From the NCBI GenBank assembly GCA_964252035.1, contig OZ176207.1: a stretch of 64,000 bases of DNA. One strand, written 5' to 3'. Below the pieces are notes generated by a model. It was given only the letters and a program-made list of their open reading frames with translations. It was not told where the DNA came from and did not search any database. This stretch comes from Podarcis erhardii (taxonomy: Eukaryota). Below, piece by piece: positions 9,931 through 57,308 of the stretch (its first letter is position 1; every line of letters begins with the position of its first letter). The translations under genes were made by a program, and so were the position numbers.

Positions 9931-12900
9931 GTAGCTGAACTGGGTTTCACACAGTCACAAAAACAAAACAAAAAAGCCACAAAAACAAAAATGCAAAATA
10001 AATAGCAAAAACAGACAGACCTCAGCTTAACAATCAAAACGGAAGTGTGGCACTCAAATCAGAAGTGTAACACTCAAAACAGAGCATGTTTGGCTTCCAA
10101 AAAATGTTCACAAACTGGAACACTTACTTCTGGGTTTGCAGTGTTTGGGTTCCAAGCTGTTTGAGTACCAAGGCATTTGAGAACAAAGGTAGCACTGTAC
10201 AGTGGTTCTGATCCTACCTTTGGGACCGAGTTCAGAGAGTAGCATTGAGAGATTGCTATTTAACATCTCCATTGCTATTTAACATCTCCATTGCTATTTA
10301 ACATCTACATGAAGTCTCCATTGCTATTTAACATCTACATTGCTATTTAACATCTACATTGCTATTTAACATCTACATGAAGTCACTGTGAGCAGTCATT
10401 GGGAGTTTTAGAGTGAGGTGCCAGCAGTCCCCCCTTGCCTCCACAGGTCCTCAGCAGTCCCCCCTTGCCTCCACAGCGGCCCCTCTAGGAGGCACTGCTG
10501 GTCTCCTTCCACCCTGCTCCCAATGTTATTATTTATCTCACCCTTGTTCCTGATGTAAACCTTGACTCCCTCTTCTTCCCTGGTGATGGGAGGGGGGCAC
10601 CATTTTATGATTTGCCTCAGGTGCCAAAATGACTTGGGCTGGCCTTGAAGCAGCAGGTTCACAGTTTGGGGATGCTTCTAGATCCAGCTCTGTCACTAGA
10701 GGCTCAGACAGCCGCAGTGGCTAGAAGTGCCTTTTACCAAGGGCAGCTGGTTCAACAGCGACGGCCATTCCTGGACCAGGAAAGCCTTGCCACAATAGTT
10801 TATGCGTTGGTAACTTCAAGACTGGACTATTGCAATGTGCTCTATGTGGGGGCTTCCCTCACGCTTGATGCTGAAGCTGCAGCTAGTGCAGATGTTTATA
10901 AAATTTGTAGGAGTTTTAATATTTTTAGTCTTTTATTGTGGTTTTAACCTTTTTATGTTTTAAATTACAGCTGTATAATTTTTAGTTACAATTTCATTGT
11001 TTTATCCTTTTTGTAAACCACTGAGGTTTTTTCTACAAGCAAGCAGTATATAAATATAAATAAATAAAACAAAGGGAAGCTTTGTAACACATGGTTTGCA
11101 ATATATTTCCCCCTAGTCCATTCATACATCTTGAATGTGATTAGATGCTGAATGATACATCATTTACTTTTTACCAGAACTAATATTCTCTTCCTGCATT
11201 TGCTTGCTTTAATGATGTCTCTTGCAAGTGCAATACAAATATTGGTGGCTTGTAATACTAATCTGAAATACGATACAAGAAGTCTGGCTTCCAAAGTTCT
11301 TCTCTAAGTATTACAAAATATGGTCTGGAGAATAATATACATCCAGCTTCCTGCCGACTCCCTTACCCACTTAATTTCCTTGCAGCTTCAGAAATGGTGG
11401 AATGGAAACAGGAAGCGGGTCCCTCTCCATTCTTCCTTGGTTCCTGACTAATGGCCATAGCAGCAAGTAAAGCATAACAGAAAGAGTGAAGAGGGAGATA
11501 CACTCCTGTCACTCTTGCTTCAAGACCACCATTGTAGGAACACCAAACCTAGTTAGTGGGAAGACAGGAGATGGCTTGCAAACAGATGGTAAAATCATGG
11601 GAAGAAGGAAGGGAATTAAGGGGCTCACTGGGCTGGGGGAAACTGTTGCATTCCTGAAAATATAATTAGGGATATGAGGGATGGAGTTTGAGTTTTTTTC
11701 CCAGTTTTGAGGGAAACTGTTCCATATTCCAAGCCCAGTTTATTTATTTATTTCACTACATTTATACAGTATATCACTTGACTGCAATAAAATCTCTAAG
11801 CAGTTTGCAAAATTCCAAGGACAATATTCTTCATTACTGATATGTTTAATTCTCTCTCTTTGTGTGTTAACTTTTAGTAGAGCCTTTGAGTAGAGTCTCT
11901 TATTTGGTGTAAAGGAACCTGAAGCAACATATATTTTGAAGATATATGAGATCCATTAATGGACATTTTGCTTCTCAAATGAACCCTTTACAATTCACTG
12001 GTCTTTTGAATTTGGGGTCAGCAAAGAAATTTGCTGGAATGAGGAATACAGGACTGGGCTATGAGAACTCTACAGTTCCACTGATGTAGATGTTTGTTGT
12101 CATCAAAGCAAACTAACTGCTGAATACTTTTAGAATTTAAATAACAAGCCAATCAATACAAAGTTTGTATTGAAATAATTTTGTTGCTTCATGAAAAAAG
12201 AATATTTAAGGTTTTGGTCTCTCTCTCTCTTTAAGGTATTGAGTTTATCTTCTGAAGCTTGCAAGAAAGTAACTTTTCATGTCCCTCATAATCTAAAGGC
12301 AGGGGCATTTGTTGGCCAAGGTGAGAATCCAATAATGCGTTGTTGCTGTTGTTGTCAAATATGTACTATTTGAAAACCAATAATATATAGGGAAATTAAA
12401 ATTTAACCTGAGTTGTTTCCAGATTCTGGAGTTCAAATTCTAAGGTTACCTAAATTATCCTACATATTATGTGAATTGTACCGATCCGGAGGACAATAGG
12501 TTATGGGGAGTGCCCAGACCACCTGTGCCATCAACAGCTAATTAATTTTTGGCCAGGGCAGTGGGGACTCCTCTGCCTGTATATCATAAATTTGATTTGG
12601 CACTAAATACAGTTTTAGGCACCTTTGTTTGGAATTACGTCCTTGTAAACTATTTTTCCTCCTCATTTCAACTAGTCCTTTAAATTTATATTTTCCTACA
12701 GTAAACATGAAACAGTGTCTTAATCATTCTGAAATTATTTACTCAAACAATCCCAATTTCACAATTCAAGAAGATGGCTCATTGTATACAACAAGGGATG
12801 TTTCCCTGACTTCCCATGAAATCATCATCACCATATTTCTTAAAAGCAATCATGAACAGGAACAAAAGAAGATACATATTAGTTTGCTCACACATTCCAA

Positions 12901-15900
12901 AAAGGTAAGCATATCTGATTTGCATCAGTATATCTTATCCTGCTTTTTTCTGCTCTTTTCACTTCTTCCTCATCTTTTAGTGCTGCTGTTTTACTTTGAA
13001 GGACAATTTTCATGACTCTGTGATCAGAATCTGAATGTGTATTCCCATATGCTACAATTATCCTAGAAGTCAGGAAGTCTTATTAACTGTTAAAATATTT
13101 GTAATTCTAGCAGAGAGATAGACACAGAGGGACTGAAAAATAAAGTGATGCAACACATAGGGTGGCATCCAACTTAATCAGAGGAGACCCATTGAAATCA
13201 ATGGATTTAGGTGCCTTGAGTATGACTTGGCTGAATACTGCTCATGATTGCTATTGTTGTTTGCTTAGTTATCTCTCCCGTTCTTCTAGGTCCCAATAGC
13301 AAAGGCAAGACATTTACGAGATACTTTTCTTAGACGGACTAAACGGAGATGGGGTCCTGTCCCAACTATTTTAATGGAAAACTCACTTGGACCTTATCCA
13401 ATGCAGATTCAACAGGTATGTTTTAAATTCACCTCTTCATTTTTACTTTTCAAATTATCAGTCAAGGATTTTTGAGCAGCTTGGCATATGTTATAAGTGA
13501 TCAGTAACAGAACTTCAATCAATAGGAACTATGATTGAAGCCTTCAGATACACAGCATACTCTCTGCCCCCCAATTCTTGCTAGGCAGCCAAGAACTTTA
13601 CTGTTAAACACATCGTTTGTGTCTATAAATGTCTACCCCATCTGGTAAACTCATCTGTCTGGGGGAATTGTTTGTTGCATCACTGCTGCTGATATATACA
13701 TTGCTGCAGAAATCTGGGATTAGGGAAACCAGTTTGTCTCTGCCTACATCTTTTGAAGAAGCTTGTAATTGCAATGTAAATATCTAAAGTCAGCTATTTA
13801 ACACCAGAGATGGAAATCCATTTAAATGCTTCAGCTTTTGCCTGGAAGTACCAAGGAAACAACAGCTTGAGTCTGATGGGAGTTCAATATAAGGCTTTTA
13901 CATTTGTAAGCAACTAGCTATGTGGAACAGCCTAATCATATGAATTCTCCCTACTCTCACCAGGAACATGGTAAGCAAGTCACAAGCATTTTAGACTTTA
14001 CATGGAGCTACTATCACATGAAACATTTATTTCCTGTGTCCATAATATTTGAATTGATGTGTAAATATTTTGTTTTTGCATCTTGGGATTGCTAACGGAT
14101 TCTGAATAAATAGACAAGAAAACAAGATTTTGTTAATTATTATTTCTGTTTCAAATTGGTTTGCATTTACACAGCTGCTTTCCGACACATCACTAACATA
14201 CGATATCAGATACTCCATAAGTGGCCATGGTGTTGACAAACCACCATATAATTATTTCTACATAGAGGAGGACACTGGAAATCTATTTGTTACCTGTCCA
14301 ATCGATCGGGAAGAGTACCCAGAATTTCAGGTATGGGTTTCAGACTTCTGTTTACATATTTACTGATAAGTAACAATTGGACAGATCCATGGTATTTCTT
14401 TTACTAAAAGTTTCTCTGAACAGGGCTGCCTTCAGATGTTTTCTAAAAGTTGTGCAATTCTTTATCTCCCTGACATCTGATGGGAGGACATTCCACAGGG
14501 AGGGCCCCCACTGCTAAGAAGGTCCTCTGCAGTATAGTCTCCTCAAGGTAAAGAATTAAAAATGAATGAACAGATGCAACAATTATCTGTTGCAGCTGTC
14601 TGTATGTTACTTTTTTGACAGGTAACTGCATGATTGAGGGAAACACGCGGGGAAATGAGTTTTCAAACACTGTATCCACTACAGAGAAGCTGTTTTTGGT
14701 AGCCTCACAATGTTTACATTAGTCCTCAGTTCTTCAGTAGAAGGTGAGAGGGATTTGGTTGGTGAGCAACATGTAGAATCATCAACAGGCCATGCACAGC
14801 ATCAACTTGCCAATCAGAGCCAGATGTTCCTGTACATGTAAATAGGTGGGGGGAGAAGACTGATTTACTGGCTGCTAGCAGTACCAAGGCACTCAAGGAA
14901 ACCTGAGAAGGCATTTGTGGGTTTTCTTACAGATGAAAGATAGCAACCAGCCTGCGCTCACCCCAGCCTATTATCTTCCTTTACTTCACAGCTTTCTGAT
15001 AACACTTGCCCAATCATACTAGTGAAACAGTTCAGGAAAAGGTGAGGAGGCAAGCAGACACAAAGAACATGATGCTTGAACCAGGCATTTGACTGACTAG
15101 ATGTCTTTCCTCCTAAACTGTTGTTCTGGGCTGCTGTGTTGATATTTTGTCATTGGCTGTATTGTGGTTTTATTTTATGATTTCAATGAAAATTGTACTT
15201 CCTATAACCATTCAGTAAAGAGGAGACTACAATAATAAATATATAAATACTAACACTCAAGGTGCAGCGCCAATTGATGGGGATATATATGAAAACTTGT
15301 CCACAAAGATGGATTATAGTTGAACCAGCAAAAAGGTACTTGCCCCACCTTCCCTTCACTGTTCCCCTGTGGTCTTTCCTATCTTTCCCATATCTCCTTC
15401 TTCCTTCATCTCTCCTTTCCATGGCCCAAATGGCTGTGCCTAGTCCCTTATTTGTTTCCTTGCCTCAGACCCCTGTTCCAACACACAATTGCCTTGCACA
15501 AGTCCTTCTTTCCCAGGCCATTCAATGGACTACTTTATTTGACCATTGCTTCCTCTGTACTTTACTTTGTATGACGCACAACTCCTTTGTACCTCCTTCC
15601 CATGGCTCTTGGACTCTGTCCATTTCCTCTTATGCCACTTTACCTCATGTCCCTGCCTCCTTTCTCGCTTCTTCTTAGTCCAACTCAACTGTAGCCTATC
15701 CTTATGTCTGTTTTTAAATGCATATTCTCTGGGAGATCATGGGGACAGAATGTCCCATGCTTTTCTGGATGTACAGTTGGACTGCTCACCACAATGGCCA
15801 CACACAGCATATAACAGCCTGTTCACCTTGGCAGATTCCTGTTTAGAAACTTGGACTGAAGTAATTGTGTCCTGATTTGTTAAAAATATTTTTTTTCTGC

Positions 15901-18900
15901 TTCAGATCAACTAGCAAATAAAAGTTTGTTTGTTTGTTTGCTCTCTTTTATACAGTTGATTTGCTATGCAATGACAACAGATGGATATACACCAGAGATA
16001 CCGCTTGTGCATATAATTAGAATAGAAGATGATAATGATAATGCCCCAGTGTTTGAGCAGGACGTTTATACTTTTCTTGTCTTTGAAAACTGTGGAATTG
16101 GTAATTTTAAAAAACTTTTCTTTTTTAAATAAATCATGTTTAGTTTAGACAGCAATATTTTAAAGTACTAATTAAAAACTGAGGTGCTGTGAATTGTTAT
16201 GTAAGCTCCATATCATTTTTATTTGCTATAATTCTGAGCTTATATCTGAGTTCAGACAAATATTAATCTACATATAGCCCTATACAAGGATTCTGATTCT
16301 GGTTAGAGTAATCATGTAACAGCCCCCATCCTCAGTCACACGGGGATGAGAGGCCTACCTCCATCTTCATAGCCATCATTTTTGTTACTCTACATAGGAG
16401 CCAACTCCTAGGGGCTGGGGTGTGTGTCTTTGCTCCCCCAGTAAAATATTTGAGGGGGTCAGGGGCCCCTAAGGGTTATGGGTATTGCCATCCAAATGGC
16501 TTCCATGCAACGTATCATGTGAAACGATTATGCAGGGCATAATTCATTCAAGTTGGCACCCCCTGTTGCTCTCCATGAGTTAGAGGGCAACTGTGTGAAA
16601 TGGGGAGCCTTCTATACTTGTGGAGCCTCCCCATGCATTTTAAAATACTGATTTTCCAGGTGTCTACAAGCCCTACAAATACAGTAGGTTCCCTGCTTCC
16701 CACAATTGCTCTCTAACTGATGAGAATGATGATGAGTAAGCATGACACTGGTAAAGTCATCTCCAGAGTGTACCTGTCCCCCAAATGAGTTGTTGCTATA
16801 ACCAGCAGGAGAACTTCGGTTTCTCATCAAAGAAAGGGTGGTGAACTACTGTTCAACAATGCAGTCCTAAAATAACGAACTTCACTATTTATGCAGTAGG
16901 AAGTCCCCAACAGCGGGGGAAACCAATCTGTTTCAAATAAGAATATAGAAAGATGCATAGACAGATATATCTGTTTCGTTGATCAAATGTTAAGAACGGT
17001 TATATTTCTCTACAGATGTTTTAAAATAGGTATACTTAGGTATACAAAAGTGATTTTTTAAAAAAGAATTCTGACATATATGCCTGGATTTACATGTTTA
17101 GATTAAGTGAAAAATCACCACATCTAAATAATTATTTTAAAACTATTTTATGAAGGAAAGCTGGAAATTTAAAGATGATGTATTGTACATGCAGGGACGC
17201 TAGTTGGACAAGTGACTGCAACAGACAATGATGAGCCATACACCCTACATACTGAAGTGAAATACAGAATTGTATCCCAGGATCTTCAAAGTTATCAGAA
17301 TTTAAGGGTATTTGCTATAAATCCAGATTCAGGCTCTATTACGGTGGTAACATCACATCTGGACAGAGAGGTAAATTTCCTGTGCACCTAGCCTTCATTC
17401 ACATGCCAAAACTCTATCAAGAAGGGCAACTTGGAGCTTTTTAGAGGGAAGGTAGATTTTAAGTGAAATAAATTGGTACATCGCCATGCAATTGTTGTTT
17501 AGGATCAGAATGTGAAGTCATTCTTGCTCCCTCTTTAAAAAAATACGGAGATGTGTTTGATGTTGCAAACAGATCATTTAAAGCATATATTGCTCAAATG
17601 CTATTTTGTAGGCTCAAACAATGCCAAGCTGTTTTTTTTCAATGCAGCATCCATCATCTTGGCTAATATTATACAAATGTGTAACTATCTGAAGAACTGC
17701 GCAGTCCCATGGTCTCTGGTTTTCCTTTTCATAAAATCTTGTGATTTCAATCAGAACAGGGAAATTATGTTTATATATTCTTTTTAATGCAGACAACACC
17801 AGAGTATAAGCTACAAATTGAAGCAAGAGATATGGGAGGCCAGGAATTTGGTCTGTGCACTACAGCACAAGTTATAATTACAGTTGGAGATGTAAATGAC
17901 AATGCTCCACAATTAGAACAAAATGTGGTAAGTTTGTTATTGTTAAAATTCAACAGAGCTTTAAAAAACGTGGGGACCTCCTGAGAAGCCAGCATTTCCT
18001 ATGGTGTAAATGTAATCATAATAAATGTTAAATTGAGGAAAAATATAATTATTTGCATTTTAGCTATAGAGAATTCTATCAGGATGAAACATGTATTTAC
18101 AGAATCATTGTCAAGACTATTCTATTTCTCTGAATCCTTCAAAATTACAGCTTTGTTATAGTGCAATCCTACAGATATCTGCCCAGAAGCATGGCCTATT
18201 AAATTCAGTTGGGCTTACTCACTGGTACATGAATATAGGATTGCAGCCCAAGTCCCAAAGTAGCAAAAGTATGTGTCTATCAGATTCTACTCTGTTAGAT
18301 GCATGAAGGGTTAACCTCAGTTTGCAGCTATATAGACATGTGGGTAAAAAAGAAGAGGTGGGAGTGGAATGCTATTACCATGTCTGGCCAGGAGGCCACT
18401 AAAACAAGAGATACATGTGTCCTATTACTATGGTAACTAAAATACAAATGCAAACAAGGCATAGATGCAAACAAATTCCCATCCTAGGGGTAAAGTATCA
18501 ACTCAAGAGTTGATGTGGTCTAATCTCCAAAGATAATGAACAGGAAAAGCAAAATGAATAATACTGTATATGTAAACACCAAGGGACAATCACATCCTGT
18601 AGTGAGCTAGCCATTCCCATTTGCGGCTCATTTCAGGTCTGGTAGTGTCAGATCTGCACAAGGCTTGAAACTCTGCAGCTTCACCACTGGAGTTAAAATA
18701 TTTTATTGTTGCCTTTGGAAAATCATTTCACTGTTCTAGAAGTGTTTATTAATTGCTTATTTGAAAACGTCATTTCAGTATGAAGTGAAAATATATGAAA
18801 ACGAAGAAAATATAGAAATATTGTGCATTCCTGTAAGAGATAATGATGAACCTGGGACTCCTTCATGGTTGGCTGTATTCACAATTATAAAAGGAAATGA

Positions 18901-21900
18901 AGATAATGTTTTTTCTATGAATATTGATCAAGAGAGGAATGTCGGGTGTTTACTTGCTTTAAAGGTAAATGCAGATGGGGAAAAATTACCTATGGTACAA
19001 AGGTATATTACTAATGGGAATCATCTAGAGTTTTTTTTGGAAATTATTTGATGGTATGCAACATAATTTTAAGCCCTGAAAGGCTGTTCTTGAAATGTTA
19101 TATTTGTAACTATTTTCCAAGGGTTCCCAAGCTTGAAATCCTCTAAAGGAAATTTATCCATGGTTTATGCAATTTGGGGGAAATAAGCAAGTATGAGGAA
19201 AAGGAAGGGCGGCAAGAAACTTAATGAAATTGCAAAATACCAATTGATAACTATTGTGTGGAATCCAAAAGGTGCCATTCCACTAATGGAAGGAATCCAC
19301 TATACCAACAGGGAGGCAATTTTTGAAGACTCCCTATGCAGCCCACATCCCTTTAATCTACTCTACAGGGTCCCTGGCCAGAGAAATCACCCCAAAAAAT
19401 TGTCCTCTCCCTGTTCTGCTTATGCATGTCTTCTGTCAGCAGAGTGACACCCATTGGATTCCACTCATTATTTTTACCATATTTGTTCAAAGTTTATAAC
19501 TGCAACCCAGTAATAAATATTGTGTTAGTTTTAACAGAAATGTGTTTGTTTCCAGGGACTGGACCATGAAACTTCCAAGGAGAGAAGATTAGAAATTGTT
19601 GTAAATAATGAAGCACCTTATATCCTAGCACCAAATTCAAGAGCCCCATCAAGAAACCCCACCACAATTGTCATTGAAGTTATGGATGTGGATGAGGGGC
19701 CAACATTTGCCACTGAATATATTATAACTTTAAGGGAATCTTTCCCAAAAGGAACAGTGGTTGGAATCTATCAAGCATATGACCCAGAAACTGGAGATAG
19801 CACAGGCATAAGGTACACTTTTAATTATAACACAGTAATTTGGTTTATAGATTGTGGTTAAAAACAGGGAACAATTATAACTGGTTTATATTATCACATT
19901 GTACTAATGGTATACAACCCTCCTAAAATGTTCTCAATAGTTACGGAATAATAAATGACCCATGCAACTGGATCACCATTGATGAAACAGGACAGCTGAT
20001 AACCACTACAATTTTAGACAGAGATATATTAAATGAGGAATACAGTCAATGCATTGTAACAGTCTCTGCAACTGACCAAAGTGAGTAACAAATGCTTGTA
20101 AACTGCTGATTATGCTATCTACATATTTGCAGTAGTATTTTGTATCTTACTTTTTAACCACAATTTAAGATACAAAGTATTTTGTATCTTACTTTTAAAC
20201 CACAAACTCCATCTTCTGTTGCTGAACTGAATTCCTAGTTTGTTGCCCTGTTGCCACAGAAATAAGTCTAAAAGCTAGCTTTAATCCATGAGAGAGAGAG
20301 AGAGAAATTCTTATAATTTTCTATATTTGGGGCAGAACTTTTTTTCCACTACTACATATTTCCACAGATTAGCTGAAGCCTGCTACTGTGTCAGTGTGTG
20401 ACTATTTACAGCATTAAATCATGAAAAACTTCCATTTTCCAGGTGGTAAAACAGGTCAAGGGAAAATTGTGATAAACATCATGGATGAGAATGACAATTT
20501 CCCAGTGATTATGACAAAGAATTACACCATGTGTAAGGACAAAACACCAATTTGTATTACGGCCTTTGATGCCGATCTACCTCCTTACACTGGACCTTTC
20601 CATTTTGAAATAGAGAATCGAATGGGCTTAACATGGAGGTTAACACCGAATGATGGTATGTACATGGTTTTCCCTGTCCCACTTCTGTAATAACAACTGT
20701 AGCTAACAGAACAAATAATGTAAAAATGTTCATCATTGCACAATTTGTTTTACAGATGAATCAGCATTGCTTTCACCCGTGGAAGATATTGACTATGGCT
20801 ATTATATAATACCTGTTAGGATATATGATAATGAAGGTAACAGTGGAATAAGTGAAATAACAGTTCACTACTGTGACTGTGACATTCCAAGTAATTGTTC
20901 TGAACGCAGCACAGTCGCTGCTCTGGAGAATGGGGCAATCCCTGTAGATCGCGTTCCATATCAAGCAGAATCTGCTTTTGGTCCCTGGGGCATTGCTGCA
21001 ACAGTCCTTGGATCAGTATTATCACTGTGTAAGTATATCGCTCTCTTATAGATGATATACAAAATGAGCCATTAACTCCAGTCTGTTGCAAAACTGCTTC
21101 TCCCTTGACTCTTCCTTGGAGTTCTAAATGTTCAGTTAAGGTGGCTTAGTCCCATGTTTGTGTATATAGGTATGTTAAATGGAAAATGCACATAGCAATT
21201 GGCTACTGTGCACATTCACCAGGTGTCCTGGAAAATGTGCACATGTCCATAAAGATGGACTTCTGCACATTTCCCGGTCAATTTGTACAATCCACAACAA
21301 GCTTTGGGCATTGTGCATGTATCAGCTACATTAGGTATGTTCTCTGGCCAATATGCATTATCTCCAACAGGCTTTGCAAAACGTGCATATCTCAACTGCA
21401 TTCTGTACATACATGCTGACTGTTTGCTGTTTGGGAGAACTAGGCCTCTTTTCCAGAGCTATCAAATCTTCCAAAGGAAGAAAAGGGGGGGGGGGAATGC
21501 CCTGAATTGAAAAATCATGCGTAGCATTTTATTATTAGAGGTACTCATTAGATTTGTACACCACCCTTCATCCGTAGATCTCAGGGTAGTTCAGAGCATA
21601 AAAATACAAGCTAAAGACACAAATAAACATAATAAGAACAAGAAGAAGCCAAACCAAACCAATAACCTCCTTCTGCTCCCCCCAAAACATTTAAAACGCT
21701 ATAGGATGTTAATCAGCCAAAGGCTTAGTTGAAGAGGAACATTTTAACCTGGTGCCCAACGGTGTATGATGAAGGTATCAGCTGAACATCCCTGGAGAGA
21801 GCATTTCACAAATGGGGAGCCACCCTTTACTTTATTGTATTTACTTCTCCAGCCCCCCACTTCCTGAGGTACATGCCAGCCTCCGATGCTATTTGCTTTA

Positions 21901-24893
21901 TAGAAAATATGTAACAATTTACTTATTGTTTACTTATTTAAATTTACTTATTTAAATTCAGTTCCCTTCATGCATGACTTTGAATCACATAATTAAAAAC
22001 TAAAGCTCAGATTATGTGTATTTCTTTCTACAGCAGGGATGATGGTACCCTGTGGTTACTGGCTCCATAAAAGAAATTCCAATACTGAAGAAGCGCCTGG
22101 AGAAGCACCTGGAGAAGCGTCTAATAATGCAGCTTTTGAGAACTTAATGATGTCAAACACAGAGGCACCAGGTGAAGAAATGACAGTAAGTAGCATTTTT
22201 TGGCTAAAAGTTATGAAGTTCCATACTGCATTTGCTTTCTAAAAAGTGGGGTGTGGGTGGGTGGGTGCACACTAAATATTAGAGTTGCTGTGTTACTATA
22301 AAAGGGGAAAAACATGCTTGCAATGTTTTATCTTTTTAGTGTGTGTACTTTTGAGCTAACTCCTGCACTGTGGGTGTGAGAGAGCGTGTGAGTGAGAGAC
22401 AGAGAAAGGTAGGGGATCAGTAAGAAGACTGCTGGGCACCCAAAAAATTCCAAAACATAAGGTGGTATTCAACTAAGTTTTATTCGGAATATACACATGG
22501 AAATTAATGAACATGGCTACGTTTCTGGGTTCAGAAAAGATTGGGATTCATTTTCTTGGGTTTGGAAGTCAAGTTAAGCCAACTCTACGTGCCAAATAAG
22601 ATGGTGGGCAGTAAGTTAGCTGCAGCACTTTATCATGGTTATAAGAGGACCTACAGGTTGTAATGTGGCCTGGTGCTGCAAAATGTATTTCTGGATCCTG
22701 GAATGGCATGCAGGCAAGAGAGTTGCTGAGTTGTGGAGATGGTAAGGCCCACAAGTTACTGCTTTGAGTTGGTATGGGATATGTATACATAATGGGGAAA
22801 ATAGTTGGTTTGGGTTCAGGCCCTGTTTTTCCGAGAATTCAGGAATCTTATCTCCCAAACTATAGATGGTAAAAAGAAACTGCTGCTTCTTTTACAAAAT
22901 TCTGCTGTTATCTTTCTTTTCAGGTTCTAAATATACTTCCAGTGAGCACACTGAATACAGCTGTAAGCATGGGCACAGTTGCAGAGAAAACTGGAAAGCA
23001 GGAAAGTTTGGAAGTGATAAAAGGAGAAGGCCATCACCCACCAGAATTGGTCAAAGGTGGAGGAAATAAACTGGCAGCATCTTTACATGACATCAGAGGG
23101 CAAAGCAAACCAGAATTAGTCAAAGGAGGAGGAAAACTCTTGGCATCATCTTTACATGATATTACAGGGCATCACAAACCAGAACTAGTCAAAGGCGGAG
23201 GAAATATCGTGGCAGCATCTTTACATGATATTAGAGGGCTTCGCAAACCAGAATTAGTAAAAGGCGGAGGAACTCTATTGGCAGCATCTTTACATGATAT
23301 CAGAGGGTATCGCAAACCAGAATTATTCAAAGGTGGAGGAAATCACTTGACAGCATCTTTACACAATATCAAACAACCCATACGGAGTTCCTCCAGGGAT
23401 TTGTGCTCACAATGGCAGGAATTTACCAATCCTCATTTAGCTAAAGTAAGCATTCTGATACAGATTTCCCATGGTTTATGTTTGGATTAATGTTAAGACT
23501 ATCCACCATAGTGTGATATATTTCAGTTAAGTAGCTACAGTTCATATTCTGGATTTTAATATTGGCTGTAGCTCTCTAGTTATTTGATGCACTTGGGCTG
23601 TTTTACTGGAAAGATCCATGTTGTTCATGCTTGTGAGGTGTTTGTGTGGCCCACAATTATTAATATATTTCCAAAAAAGAGTCGAAGGTCACTCACAGCA
23701 TAGTATACTGTTAAAACAATACAATAAAAGCTAAAAATTCAGTTATAATACTAAATAGCGTAAAGCAGTGAGATAAAACATAATCCATAAAGATGACAGC
23801 AGAAAACACATCAATACCATCAATTAACGCCTCATACAATCAGCATAAAATAGTATCAGTCACTTATCAAGCAAGGCAACATAGCCCAAAGAGTGGGGGA
23901 AATCAGATCACCTTCCTTTGGGATGCTGTTTCAGAGCTTTGGTGCAACTACTGAGAAAGTCCTACCTATTCAAATGCTTCCATTATTTGAATGCAAAGCC
24001 TAATGCTGATGCTCAAGGTATCCCACAGTTCTTGCCATCAAAATTTTAAAAGGAAACTGAGAAAAGAAAGCAAGCCCACAGATCCTGTACTGACCAGGAA
24101 GGGGGCATTTTGTTCACTGCCCAGGCATTCTGTTGGATGAAGGGTGACATAAAAACACAATAAATATTAATAAATAGGCGGCCAGAAAATCCGTTTCAAC
24201 CCGATGATTCTATCCTGTGTAGTATGGGATAGATTGACACAAGAAGCTGATCATTGCCTTTAATAAATAGTATGCAAACTGCATTGTTATGCTTTATAGA
24301 AAGGGATTTAAATAGTATGAATCATATACATGAATTATATTCATCTTTGTATGCAGGAACCAGTTAGAAGCTCTGATTTATGTTTAGGTGCATTTAAGAA
24401 AATGGTTAACATGTACTTTCTTTGTGTGCAGAAGGTGTTTTTGTGTGAACAGGAGGAAGAATGTAAACGTGTCGGCGAATATGTACATTCATATAAATAT
24501 GAAGGAAAAGGATCGCTGGTTGGTTCCCTAAGCTCCTGTACTGGCGAGTCATCATCAGAAGAACTTGAGTTTTTAAATGAGCCAGAGCCTGCTTTTAAGA
24601 CATTGGTTGAAGCCTTTGTAATGAAGAAGCATGCTTCCATTGGTTCTGAAACCCACCTGCACAATTCTACAGGAAGCTATGTGCTGACTTCCACAGTTGG
24701 AGGCAGCAATGCTTCTGAATACCAGCTGCTAGAAACCACAGGACAGAAGAGTGCTCTCGTGCCCAGAACGTGCTTGCTGGTTTCCCAAAGGCAACTTGTT
24801 GGCCACTGTGAGAACAGGATGCTGGACCAGATGGGCCACTGGTCTGACACAGCAGGCTCGTCTTATCTTCTTAACTCCATTGAAATGAATTAA
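7809..24893 (+). CDS. DSC1: Desmocollin gene A (DSC1-like), 16 coding exons, ~1103 aa, with remodelled cytoplasmic tail
   Basis: Exons 7809-7889, 12236-12320, 12702-12904, 13290-13415, 14175-14330, 15956-16100, 17195-17370, 17793-17927, 18779-18964, 19556-19812, 19941-20080, 20443-20655, 20756-21028, 22034-22185, 22924-23445, 24432-24893 join in frame (3312 nt), all GT-AG. Signal peptide ending QLLFSLL resembles mammalian DSC1. Also furin site RRTKR|RW, DxNDN/LDRE/PE cadherin Ca2+ motifs, TM segment and YEGxGS tail motif. The symbol rests on signal-peptide similarity and gene order, so orthology is tentative. Confidence 0.9.
9675..10197. mobile_element. Tc1/mariner (Tigger-like) non-autonomous element
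   Basis: TIRs CAGTGGTACCTT / AAAGGTAGCACTG with TA duplication on both sides; contains (ATCA)n. Confidence 0.75.
10252..10384 (+). repeat. 19-bp minisatellite (TTGCTATTTAACATCT[C/A]CA), 6 units in 2 higher-order blocks
   Basis: Read directly; each three-unit block ends in TGAAGTC. Confidence 0.9.
12236..12320 (+). CDS. DSC1: Gene A exon 2 (VLSLSSEACKKVTFHVP...)
   Basis: 85 nt, same length as gene B exon 2; AG/GT boundaries. Confidence 0.9.
12702..12904 (+). CDS. DSC1: Gene A exon 3 (prodomain)
   Basis: 203 nt, NPNFTIQEDGSLYT motif, AAG|GTAAGC. Confidence 0.9.
13290..13415 (+). CDS. DSC1: Gene A exon 4 (furin site, mature N-terminus RWGPVP)
   Basis: 126 nt, LRRTKRRW...MENSLGPYPMQIQQ, CAG|GTATG. 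Confidence 0.92.
14175..14330 (+). CDS. DSC1: Gene A exon 5 (EC1)
   Basis: 156 nt, YSISGHGVDKPP...IDREEY. Confidence 0.92.
15956..16100 (+). CDS. DSC1: Gene A exon 6 (EC1/EC2)
   Basis: 145 nt, ICYAMTTDGYTPE...IEDDNDNAP. Confidence 0.92.
17195..17370 (+). CDS. DSC1: Gene A exon 7 (EC2)
   Basis: 176 nt, VGQVTATDNDEP...LDRE; not in ORF track. Confidence 0.92.
17793..17927 (+). CDS. DSC1: Gene A exon 8 (EC2)
   Basis: 135 nt, EARDMGG...DVNDNAP. Confidence 0.92.
18779..18964 (+). CDS. DSC1: Gene A exon 9 (EC3)
   Basis: 186 nt, YEVKIYENE...IIKGNED. Confidence 0.92.
19556..19812 (+). CDS. DSC1: Gene A exon 10 (EC3/EC4)
   Basis: 257 nt, GLDHE...VNNEAPY...DVDEGP...AYDPETG; not in ORF track. Confidence 0.92.
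19941..20080 (+). CDS. DSC1: Gene A exon 11 (EC4)
   Basis: 140 nt, [13 protein letters not shown]...LDRD...ATDQ. Confidence 0.92.
20443..20655 (+). CDS. DSC1: Gene A exon 12 (EC4/EC5)
   Basis: 213 nt, GKTG...MDENDNFP...AFDADLPP. Confidence 0.92.
20756..21028 (+). CDS. DSC1: Gene A exon 13 (EC5 and start of TM)
   Basis: 273 nt, HYCDCDIPSNC...FGPWGIAATVLGS, T|GTAAGT. Confidence 0.9.
22034..22185 (+). CDS. DSC1: Gene A exon 14 (TM end, juxtamembrane)
   Basis: CAGCAG tandem acceptor (exon start 22034 or 22037), [19 protein letters not shown]|GTAAGT. Confidence 0.88.
22924..23445 (+). CDS. DSC1: Gene A exon 15 (cytoplasmic, 5x 23-aa repeat)
   Basis: 522 nt open frame, ends WQEFTNPHLAK|GTAAGC; homologous to the 270-nt gene B exon 15. 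Confidence 0.9.
24432..24893 (+). CDS. DSC1: Gene A terminal exon (catenin-binding segment plus 88-aa extension)
   Basis: TGCAG|AAGGTG acceptor, KVFLCEQ...YEGKGS...LEFL, open to TAA at 24891-24893. Confidence 0.85.
   Translation, partial: KVFLCEQEEECKRVGEYVHSYKYEGKGSLVGSLSSCTGESSSEELEFLNEPEPAFKTLVEAFVMKKHASIGSETHLHNSTGSYVLTSTVGGSNASEYQLLETTGQKSALVPRTCLLVSQRQLVGHCENRMLDQMGHWSDTAGSSYLLNSIEMN
24675..24875 (+). mobile_element. CR1/L3-type LINE 3' UTR fragment inside the coding extension of gene A
   Basis: GGCCACTGTGAGAACAGGATGCTGGAC..TGGGCC..TGGTCTGA..CAGCAGGCTC..CTTAT is the reverse complement of intergenic/intronic copies at ~29200-29330 and ~35458-35700. Confidence 0.75.
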
Positions 24894-56500: not shown

Positions 56501-57308
56501 CTATAGGTGATATTTTCTGAGCAAATGTTTAGGATTTACTTTGAAATCACCCTGCAGCTTGGAATGTGAAAAGCAATCCTTTAGTTTTAGTGTTTGGATT
56601 TAGAAAAGGTAACCTGACCAGGTATTTGTTTCGTATATCTGTGTTGTTTTAACTTGTTTTTCCTGTAGTGATTCTCTCCTGCTTTGACCTCATCTCTCAT
56701 TACTCCTCCAGTATTGACCACGGTTGATAGTAATGGCTGTAATGTCACCCAAGAAACTGTATATGTTATGAACTGGGCTCCTAAATCTGAGCCTGCCCTG
56801 TAATAAGCAATATATAACTAGGGTGTCCCCACCCCCAATTTATCTGAACATTGTTTTTTAAAAAAACTGATAAGGAAGTTCATTGCATTTGATTATTACG
56901 TATGTGATCAGTAGGTCTGATTTTGTTAAATTCGTCATAGAATGAATGATATAGACCAATCATGTGCATTTTTTGTATATAGGAACCCATTAGAGGACAC
57001 ACTCTGATTAAAAATTAAACATTGAAAGGTAAATCCACGAAATCATTTTTATGTCATGTTCAGGTTAGTTTAAGAAAACAAGTAACACCCAGTTTTTCCC
57101 CCCTATGCAGAAGGTATATCTCTGTGGACAGGATGAAGAGCATAAGCATTCCGAAGACTATGTCCTTTCATATAATTATGAAGGAAGAGGATCGCTGGCT
57201 GGCTCTGTAGGCTGCTGCACTGATCAGCAAGATGAAGAGGCGCTTGACTTTTTAGATCAGCTGGAACCAAAGTTTAGGACATTAGCAGAAACCTGTATAA
57301 AGAGATAA
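33763..57308 (+). CDS. DSC2: Desmocollin gene B (DSC2 position), a-form 910 aa, b-form 856 aa
   Basis: Exons 33763-33840, 41385-41469, 42533-42735, 43410-43520, 43993-44148, 44665-44809, 46597-46772, 47631-47765, 48151-48336, 49747-50006, 50805-50944, 52438-52650, 52747-52995, 54626-54753, 56158-56427, [56983-57028 b-exon], 57111-57308 join in frame (a-form 2733 nt). Canonical DSC C-terminus [15 protein letters not shown]. The symbol rests on position downstream of the DSC1-like gene and the CpG promoter; parts of the tail resemble mammalian DSC1, so orthology is uncertain. Confidence 0.9.
34911..35152 (+). mobile_element. Tigger-like MITE (~240 bp), copy 1
   Basis: TA|CAGTGGTACCTCGGGTT...AACCCAAGGTACCACTG|TA. 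Confidence 0.9.
35458..35700 (-). mobile_element. CR1/L3-type LINE 3' end
   Basis: TAAGAACATAAGAG..GGATCAGGCC..CACAGTGGCCAACCAGATGC..GGGAAACCCACAAGCAGGAC. Confidence 0.7.
35945..36124. repeat. Perfect 88-bp tandem duplication in gene B intron 1
   Basis: CAGACATAGACATG...TTACACAGCC starts at 35945 and again at 36033. Confidence 0.92.
39102..39318 (+). mobile_element. Tigger-like MITE, copy 2
   Basis: Same TIRs and TA TSD, highly similar internal sequence to copy 1. Confidence 0.9.
39780..39960 (+). mobile_element. Highly decayed LINE reverse-transcriptase remnant
   Basis: VPQGSVLG followed ~20 codons later by CLFADN (degenerate RT PQG and YADD motifs). Confidence 0.5.
41385..41469 (+). CDS. 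DSC2: Gene B exon 2
   Basis: 85 nt, [28 protein letters not shown]. Confidence 0.92.
42533..42735 (+). CDS. DSC2: Gene B exon 3 (prodomain)
   Basis: 203 nt, [17 protein letters not shown]. Confidence 0.92.
43410..43520 (+). CDS. DSC2: Gene B exon 4 (furin site, RWSPLP)
   Basis: 111 nt, VLRRTKRRW...[14 protein letters not shown]. Confidence 0.92.
43993..44148 (+). CDS. DSC2: Gene B exon 5 (EC1)
   Basis: 156 nt, [22 protein letters not shown]...IDREEY. Confidence 0.92.
44665..44809 (+). CDS. DSC2: Gene B exon 6
   Basis: 145 nt after a poly-T tract, [13 protein letters not shown]...EDDNDNPP. Confidence 0.92.
46241..46376. mobile_element. hAT-type palindromic MITE
   Basis: TIR CAGGC..GGCAAA, internal hairpin GGGACTACAACTCCCATCA/TGATGGGAGTTGTAGTCCC, perfect 8-bp TSD CACTAACC. 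Confidence 0.9.
46597..46772 (+). CDS. DSC2: Gene B exon 7
   Basis: 176 nt, [16 protein letters not shown]...LDRE. Confidence 0.92.
47215..47515 (+). mobile_element. L2-type LINE 3' end with (AAT)n tail
   Basis: GCCCACCCTGTGGAACACCCTCCCATCAGATGTC..CATTTGAAGGCAGCC..(AAT)n; near-identical to 48740-49080. Confidence 0.8.
47631..47765 (+). CDS. DSC2: Gene B exon 8
   Basis: 135 nt, [13 protein letters not shown]...DDANDHAP. Confidence 0.92.
48151..48336 (+). CDS. DSC2: Gene B exon 9
   Basis: 186 nt, YEAYVSEN...IIKGNEDG; not in ORF track. Confidence 0.92.
48740..49085 (+). mobile_element. L2-type LINE 3' end
   Basis: [41 protein letters not shown]; (TTA)n tail. Confidence 0.8.
49747..50006 (+). 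CDS. DSC2: Gene B exon 10
   Basis: 260 nt, GLDYE...DMDEGP...ARDPETG; weak donor AT|GTATAG fixed by reading phase. Confidence 0.88.
50805..50944 (+). CDS. DSC2: Gene B exon 11
   Basis: 140 nt, [10 protein letters not shown]...LLDRE...ATDR. Confidence 0.92.
52438..52650 (+). CDS. DSC2: Gene B exon 12
   Basis: 213 nt, GKTGTG...LDENDNFP. Confidence 0.92.
52747..52995 (+). CDS. DSC2: Gene B exon 13 (EC5/TM)
   Basis: 249 nt, [10 protein letters not shown]...[17 protein letters not shown]. Confidence 0.92.
54335..54540 (+). mobile_element. Old tRNA-derived SINE
   Basis: GTAGTTAAGAGTGTTG..GACCCAGGTTCAAATCCCC A/B-box-like head. Confidence 0.5.
54626..54753 (+). CDS. DSC2: Gene B exon 14 (TM end, juxtamembrane)
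   Basis: 128 nt, [10 protein letters not shown]...[16 protein letters not shown]. Confidence 0.92.
56158..56427 (+). CDS. DSC2: Gene B exon 15 (cytoplasmic)
   Basis: 270 nt, [19 protein letters not shown]...[13 protein letters not shown]. Confidence 0.92.
56983..57028 (+). CDS. DSC2: Gene B alternatively spliced 46-nt b-form exon ([11 protein letters not shown])
   Basis: AG|GAACCC...GAAAG|GTAAAT, 46 nt with in-frame TAA at 57016-57018; matches the known mammalian Dsc b-exon peptide [11 protein letters not shown]. Confidence 0.92.
57111..57308 (+). CDS. DSC2: Gene B terminal exon (a-form catenin-binding segment)
   Basis: [13 protein letters not shown]...[16 protein letters not shown]...[15 protein letters not shown]. 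Confidence 0.93.

Follow-up and report, generated by a model that had tools for sequence, protein, structure and literature searches.

A desmocollin b mini-exon that probably survives only as a relic beside the terminal exon in Podarcis erhardii

Can a desmocollin gene that lacks the stop codon of its b mini-exon still choose between two cytoplasmic tails? The question is raised by a stretch of 64,000 nucleotides (nt) from Podarcis erhardii (assembly GCA_964252035.1, contig OZ176207.1), here called the window, the plus strand of which carries two tandem desmocollin paralogues, genes A and B. In gene B, a short exon with an in-frame stop (the b mini-exon) lies between exon 15 and the terminal exon. 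In gene A, the corresponding place is taken by 75 nt (24357-24431) that contain no stop codon and directly adjoin the terminal exon. We consider it very probable that these 75 nt hold a dead relic of the b mini-exon, an old neutral pseudo-exon, and that gene A makes only the long "a" form.

Judged from its sequence, gene B appears to keep an a/b cassette of the functional type. Its b-exon (56983-57028, + strand) is 46 nt long, encodes 11 residues followed by TAA, and is bounded by an AG acceptor (tatAG|) and a GT donor (AAG|GTAAAT). Downstream lie intron 16 (57029-57110, 82 nt) and the coding part of the terminal exon (57111-57308, + strand; ...TCIKR, stop TAA at 57306-57308), the C-terminal sequence of which matches that of P0163 (Zootoca desmocollin-1 isoform X1). 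In gene A, exon 15 (22924-23445, + strand) encodes the cytoplasmic domain with five repeats of 23 amino acids (aa), ends in ...NPHLAK in protein models P0269, P0274 and P0277, and has its donor, AAA|GTAAGC, at 23445/23446. The intron that follows (23446-24356) closes with a pyrimidine tract and AG in its last ~16 nt (24341-24356, ttcatctttgtatgcag), and this acceptor (...tatgcAG|, AG at 24355-24356) is homologous to that of gene B. Frame 0 of the subsequent 75 nt is open (EPVRSSDLCLGAFKKMVNMYFLCVQ) and continuous with KVFLCEQ, the first residues from 24432. There the coding part of the terminal exon begins (24432-24893, + strand; KVFLCEQ...IEMN, stop TAA at 24891-24893), consisting of a conserved catenin-binding segment and then a stop-loss extension. 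An earlier description of the locus, which we call the sequence-only reading, had reported the acceptor, the 75-nt open stretch into KVFLC, and the 46-nt b-exon and 82-nt intron of gene B; its coordinates and sequence statements all hold on re-reading.

Pairwise and multiple alignments (MAFFT) of the segment against gene B and the A-type genes of other squamates trace its two parts to different origins. Genes A and B have in common the acceptor and the 14 nt that follow it (GAACCAGTTAGAAG vs GAACCCATTAGAGG), and probably CTCTGATT too, which gives a b-exon relic of ~22 nt (24357-24378, + strand; GAACCAGTTAGAAG+CTCTGATT) without stop codon or 5' splice site, the placement of the gap being ambiguous by a few bases. 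The last ~53 nt (24379-24431, + strand) align to the 3' part of intron 16, with ~75% identity to gene B and a closer likeness to the A-type intron of Hemicordylus; within them lie the AG used by the last exon (24430-24431), a pyrimidine tract and, at 24406-24410, a TTAAC that resembles a branch point. What gene A lacks is ~53 nt in which gene B has the TAA of the b-exon, the donor after it and the 5' half of intron 16, and in all three alignments the missing segment is AAAAATTAAACATTGAAAG|GTAAATCC...TGTCA of gene B. A functional b mini-exon was accordingly not found in gene A: instead of a separate exon of 43-46 nt, only ~22 homologous nt are present, directly adjoining former intron; frame 0 of 24357-24431 is free of stops, the part with TAA being deleted; and the homologous donor, with which a 5' splice site and a spliceable intron would have to begin, is deleted as well. 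With neither a stop codon nor a 5' splice site left in its cassette, gene A cannot make the classical truncated b-form, a claim of the sequence-only reading that the alignments bear out.

The open frame of 25 codons is weak evidence and in itself unremarkable. Any given frame is free of stops in 26-27% of the 75-nt stretches of the window, and shuffling the relic leaves it open in 12% of cases; when the 1-in-3 chance of a length divisible by three is included the combined chance comes to roughly 4-9%. A separate observation is that the relic peptide EPVRSSDLC (24357-24383) resembles QPIRSSSRDLC late in exon 15 (23374-23406; ~63% DNA identity with a 6-nt gap). An origin of the relic by templated repair from exon 15 was ruled out, since every base is explained by homology to the b-exon and the intron, and we take the likeness for a coincidence.

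Is the relic acceptor nevertheless used? The assembled contigs of sample X1, labelled "RNA?" and derived from a congener that is ~4-5% diverged in introns and ~1% in exons, display the profile of spliced RNA. Depth is 712 on 23330-23445, falls to 19-29 on 23455-24385, and is 737-848 from 24432 on; the intron between exon 15 and the relic thus stands at 19-29 against ~712-737 in the flanking exons, and a contig of depth 737 starts exactly at 24432. The joint 23445>24432 has GT..AG ends and a depth of 711.9, and is the sole joint in the neighbourhood among the joints listed for X1. The joint 23445>24357 is not among them, and no rise in depth occurs at 24357. The relic is covered only by an unspliced contig (24027-24461, depth 19.2) that runs through without break or gap, which shows unspliced RNA and an assembly graph without a branch at 24357. 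The X1 contigs therefore reveal neither two isoforms of gene A nor one donor joined to both acceptors, although a rare form may exist. Comparing the junctions 23445>24357 and 23445>24432 had been suggested in the sequence-only reading; with only the latter among the joints listed, the outcome favored is that the b-exon is simply dead.

NCBI gene models of three lacertids describe the same junction. In the NCBI models of P. muralis (P0269, P0275), Lacerta agilis (P0277) and P. lilfordi (P0274), HLAK is joined directly to KVFLCEQ (...SQWQEFTNPHLAK|KVFLCEQEEE...), and all eight NCBI isoforms (8/8) of the gene A orthologue of the worm lizard Rhineura floridana are a-type at the C-terminus. The two UniProt/Ensembl proteins of P. 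muralis that hold the 25 aa (EPVRSSDLCLGAFKKMVNVYFLCVQ), P0157 (A0A670I8K0) and P0280 (A0A670I8P1), omit exon 15 and reach the relic acceptor through an exon-14 donor read-through that ends at a non-canonical ACT|GCATTT, so that 15 intron-encoded residues (VSSIFWLKVMKFRT-like; window:22189-22227) precede the 25 aa of the relic. Both are probably artefacts of model building, to judge from this structure. An open in-frame stub beside a terminal exon thus already lies behind two public protein models with a spurious insert of 25 residues.

To place the lesion in time, orthologous genomic loci fetched via proteins were compared for L. agilis (L007), P. muralis (L008), Zootoca vivipara (L009) and Rhineura (L010). 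The 75-nt architecture is identical in the first three. The Zootoca relic carries five substitutions in 75 nt, one of which creates an in-frame TGA (ESVRSSDL*), and a TAG|GT site of the window reads CAA|GT there. Over the four lacertids, the relic varies at 7/75 sites, the intron upstream of it at 37/295, and the conserved coding sequence of the last exon at 11/200; small as these numbers are, the relic behaves like intron. Over the same window-Zootoca distance at which the gene A relic changed, the gene B b-exon is identical at 46/46 positions. Rhineura shares the deletion junction (TTAGAAGCTCTGGTTTATGTTTAGGTGCATTTA) and has lost the relic acceptor in addition; the loss of ~53 nt is therefore older than the split between lacertids and this amphisbaenian, and the lesion is present in five species (that of the window, P. 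muralis, L. agilis, Zootoca and Rhineura). The squamate comparison, which the sequence-only reading had also called for, reveals a decayed, intron-like relic and lends no support to an insertion isoform.

The presence of the lesion in several genomes bears on whether the missing 53 nt might be an assembly error, the b-exon of gene A being intact in reality. We found no supporting point for this idea and consider it next to impossible: the same architecture occurs in three independently assembled lacertid genomes (L007, L008, L009), the DNA contigs of a second relative (X13, ~2% diverged) cover 24312-24443 without gap and in two alleles, and the X1 contig described above spans the site as well.

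Several points weigh against regarding the relic as dead. The RNA evidence comes from one sample of a related species, with its tissue unstated and its RNA status guessed. Contigs drop rare variants, and a minor or tissue-specific 23445>24357 isoform is possible. On its shorter side the X1 contig across the junction extends for 30 letters, which is expected for 31-mer unitigs and one below the rule of thumb for bridging, and the X1 joints listed are the best-supported ones, with 56 further joints outside the list. Moreover, the relic acceptor, with its AG and a moderate pyrimidine tract, is kept in 4/4 lacertids, the frame is open in 3/4 (the window, P. muralis and L. agilis), and A0A670I8K0 and A0A670I8P1 do include the 25 aa.

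The conserved acceptor, the open frame and these two proteins would fit the proposal of the sequence-only reading that the switch was "rewired", the acceptor at 24357 serving as an alternative 3' splice site whose use adds 25 residues (EPVRSSDLCLGAFKKMVNMYFLCVQ) and keeps the full tail, so that a choice between long and longer replaces a/b. We find that proposal unlikely, and by a good distance. The joint it needs is absent among those listed for X1, where 23445>24432 alone was seen and depth does not rise at 24357; NCBI models in three lacertids use 23445>24432; and the Ensembl models with the insert skip exon 15 and depend on the non-canonical "donor". The insert would be cut short by the in-frame TGA in Zootoca, the acceptor is absent in Rhineura, the substitution rate of the relic is intron-like, and an open 75-nt frame arises by chance in 12-27% of cases. 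A weaker version, in which the relic acceptor is used at a low level or in particular tissues and yields the 25-residue insert before the catenin-binding segment in Podarcis and Lacerta and ESVRSSDL* in Zootoca, seems to us just as improbable. If it were true, the Zootoca TGA product would have a truncated tail ending in ESVRSSDL*, and a b-like form would have been functionally re-created from the remains of the old exon.

A second way to rescue a truncated product would be a cryptic and very short intron within the 75 nt. The sequence-only reading had singled out ATG|GTTAAC at 24405, which would leave an intron of 27 nt, as the best remnant donor. Here the alignments led us to a different assignment: this GTTAAC aligns with the branch-point region of gene B intron 16 (AGTAACA), its TTAAC lies 22-26 nt before the terminal exon, and the true donor was inside the lost ~53 nt. 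Most of the A- and B-type sequences in the alignment retain a T-A-A/G-A-Y motif ~21-27 nt before the AG; those of Crotalus and Gekko are too diverged at this point for a comparison. A b-like product would combine the relic acceptor with the GT at 24388 (TAG|GTGCAT), which would leave a 44-nt intron and the product EPVRSSDLCLEGVFV*, or with the GT at 24382, which would leave a 50-nt intron and EPVRSSDL*. Both sites are present and both products end early, and human introns of 37-65 nt have been catalogued, with splicing supported for 15 of them (PMC4463651). However, the practical threshold for human introns lies near 65 nt, and those below it that have been validated are few and for the most part unusual, G-rich introns (PMC4463651), whereas 24357-24431 is AT-rich. 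The sole branch-point-like motif (24406-24410) is 18-28 nt from the GTs at 24388 and 24382, and across the introns of 27, 44 or 50 nt that the relic GTs would leave, the branch point would be only 1-28 nt from the 5' splice site; taken together, the GTs present in 24357-24431 would give introns of 6-69 nt with poor consensus. Neither 24387>24432 nor 24381>24432 is among the X1 joints listed, and in Zootoca the TAG|GT is mutated to CAA|GT. A cryptic short intron is, in our judgment, very improbable.

A related possibility concerns the other side of the relic, where a truncated form could arise by read-through into intron 15 (HLAK-VSILIQISHGLCLD*). Both Zootoca RefSeq models (P0276/P0278) end in this way, by exon-15 donor read-through (...NPHLAK-VSILIQISYGLCLD*), with the terminal exon ~3 kb downstream (L009:26184), and the window has the same 14-codon read-through frame past exon 15 (VSILIQISHGLCLD*; window:23446-23490). 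If transcripts ended in intron 15, the result would be a b-like tail without the catenin-binding segment; in X1, intron depth is only ~4% of exon depth. The Zootoca intron between exon 15 and the relic is ~2 kb longer than that of the window, the insert lying between matching blocks (L009:23250-25775 vs window:23760-24030).

Returning to the dead pseudo-exon, its history probably ran as follows. In the lineage to lacertids and Rhineura, a loss of ~53 nt took away the stop of the b-exon, the donor behind it and the 5' half of intron 16, which brought ~22 nt of exon relic up against the ~53 nt at the 3' end of that intron. The piece of intron that survived still has what the terminal exon requires, namely its branch point, its pyrimidine tract and its AG, and the spliceosome would use the donor at 23446, a branch point near 24409 and the AG at 24431. 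The other AG, at 24356, lacks the downstream 5' splice site that once defined the exon and would be skipped. As the deletion spared what the splice from exon 15 to the terminal exon needs, splicing of 23445 to 24432 would proceed normally, and the only product of gene A would be the long "a" tail with its catenin-binding segment. We infer that the relic acceptor is essentially never used in any tissue.

How far back does the loss reach? The squamate paralogue to which gene A belongs, here called A-type, has a tail signature ...GSLSSCTG[EQ]S... (...GSLSSCTGES... in gene A), and its b-exon is damaged in different ways in other squamates. In Hemicordylus the acceptor is kept, an internal deletion has occurred, and GAT stands where the B-type donor has GGT; in Elgaria the acceptor AG has become GG and the stop GAA, with no GT; in Anolis carolinensis the acceptor side is deleted and GT is lacking; Crotalus tigris has an independent internal deletion; and in Gekko japonicus the stop has become CAA, again with no GT. 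None of these five A-type genes has GT at the B-type donor position. By contrast with A-type, b-isoforms ending E[SP]IRGHTLIKN are annotated for the B-type genes of many sauropsids, and all b-form proteins that we retrieved, from geckos, snakes, Rhineura, Hemicordylus, tuatara, turtle and ratite, have a B-type exon 15. The simplest reading of these sequences would be that the b-form of the A-type paralogue was given up before or early in the squamate radiation, with independent decay of the exon since, and that it was lost once, early in the history of the paralogue. A single donor mutation (GGT to GAT) shared by all A-type genes was also considered; it agrees with Hemicordylus and perhaps with Gekko, but the alignments of Elgaria and Anolis can be read in more than one way, and a single ancestral event is not claimed.

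Both genes lie on the + strand: exons of gene A occupy at least 12233-24893, and gene B has a CpG-rich start near 33 kb and extends as far as 57308. The window contains no runs of N. A search with one ectodomain exon was dominated by giant multi-repeat cadherins, but two of its matches, P0058 and P0022, led to the squamate desmocollins. Both genes appear to be desmocollins, with cadherin ectodomain repeats, a transmembrane segment, a cadherin-type tail and desmocollins as nearest relatives. The nearest proteins are lacertid "desmocollin-1-like" models from P. muralis (XP_028594399), P. lilfordi, L. agilis and Zootoca; gene A exons are 87-100% identical in alignment to P0157 of P. muralis; and the annotated relatives of genes A and B, named desmocollin-1/2-like, carry PF00028, PF01049 and PF08758. 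In Zootoca the 3' end of gene A is absent from the 10 kb upstream of gene B (L001), because the intergenic distance is larger in that species; it was located via P0276 (L009).

The cytoplasmic tail of gene A varies in other respects as well. Five of the 23-aa repeats of exon 15 are found in the window (23035-23385), in L. agilis and in the newer P. muralis assembly (L008:21250-21830), four in Zootoca, and one unit in the non-lacertids Rhineura and Hemicordylus; the 1011-aa NCBI model of P. muralis has one repeat only, which reflects the model or an older assembly and not biology. In the snake gene A orthologues P0165 (Crotalus tigris) and P0272 (Thamnophis), the transmembrane segment is followed by three tandem copies resembling one 10-residue unit, so that this fast-changing tail has acquired another lineage-specific repeat there. 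At the other end, the frame of gene A runs ~88 codons beyond the usual desmocollin end (...EAFVMKK) into repeat-like sequence (24630-24893), and thousands of contigs stack on 24690-24860 in the sequencing-run comparison. The NCBI model of P. muralis has this C-terminal extension too, and L. agilis departs after ...TTGQKN.

The desmocollin b-form still has no known function (PMC3268089). In the literature on squamate desmocollin splicing we found no paper describing such a loss; only DSC1 is listed, among lizard claw proteins. For a very long time one squamate paralogue has been able to do without the a/b choice, which its neighbour keeps letter-perfect, and this contrast between genes A and B is comparative evidence, of modest weight, that a cluster needs the b-form in no more than one of its genes.

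It is a familiar pattern that, once a gene has been duplicated, one of the copies loses an alternative cassette exon and the isoforms become divided between the paralogues. Genes A and B resemble it in that one paralogue keeps both isoforms and the other only the constitutive one, the unused exon decaying differently in each lineage. The one peculiarity is the stub that the deletion produced in lacertids, open, in frame and next to the terminal exon; otherwise this is ordinary decay of a pseudo-exon, and one of two duplicates has lost a splice variant in the usual way. In mammals, a/b splicing of DSC1-3 depends on an exon 16 mini-exon of 46, 46 and 43 nt, respectively, with an in-frame stop (PMC3268089). 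Gene B matches this arrangement: between exon 15 and its last exon lies one of 46 nt that encodes 11 residues and a stop. Gene A descends from a gene so arranged, its acceptor and ~22 nt of the exon being still recognisable. Unlike the mammalian cassette, that of gene A is without stop, 5' splice site or an intron 16 of its own, and only the a-type junction is seen in the RNA contigs and NCBI models. In having only the long "a" tail, gene A is like zebrafish zfDsc, which has 16 exons, no mini-exon, and a single band by reverse-transcription PCR, corresponding to the a-form only (PMC3268089). However, the zfDsc mini-exon is described simply as missing, whereas gene A has undergone a secondary loss with a datable relic, next to a paralogue that keeps the cassette. 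Gene A thus represents another kind of a-only desmocollin, in which the mini-exon was lost secondarily and from just one of two adjacent paralogues.

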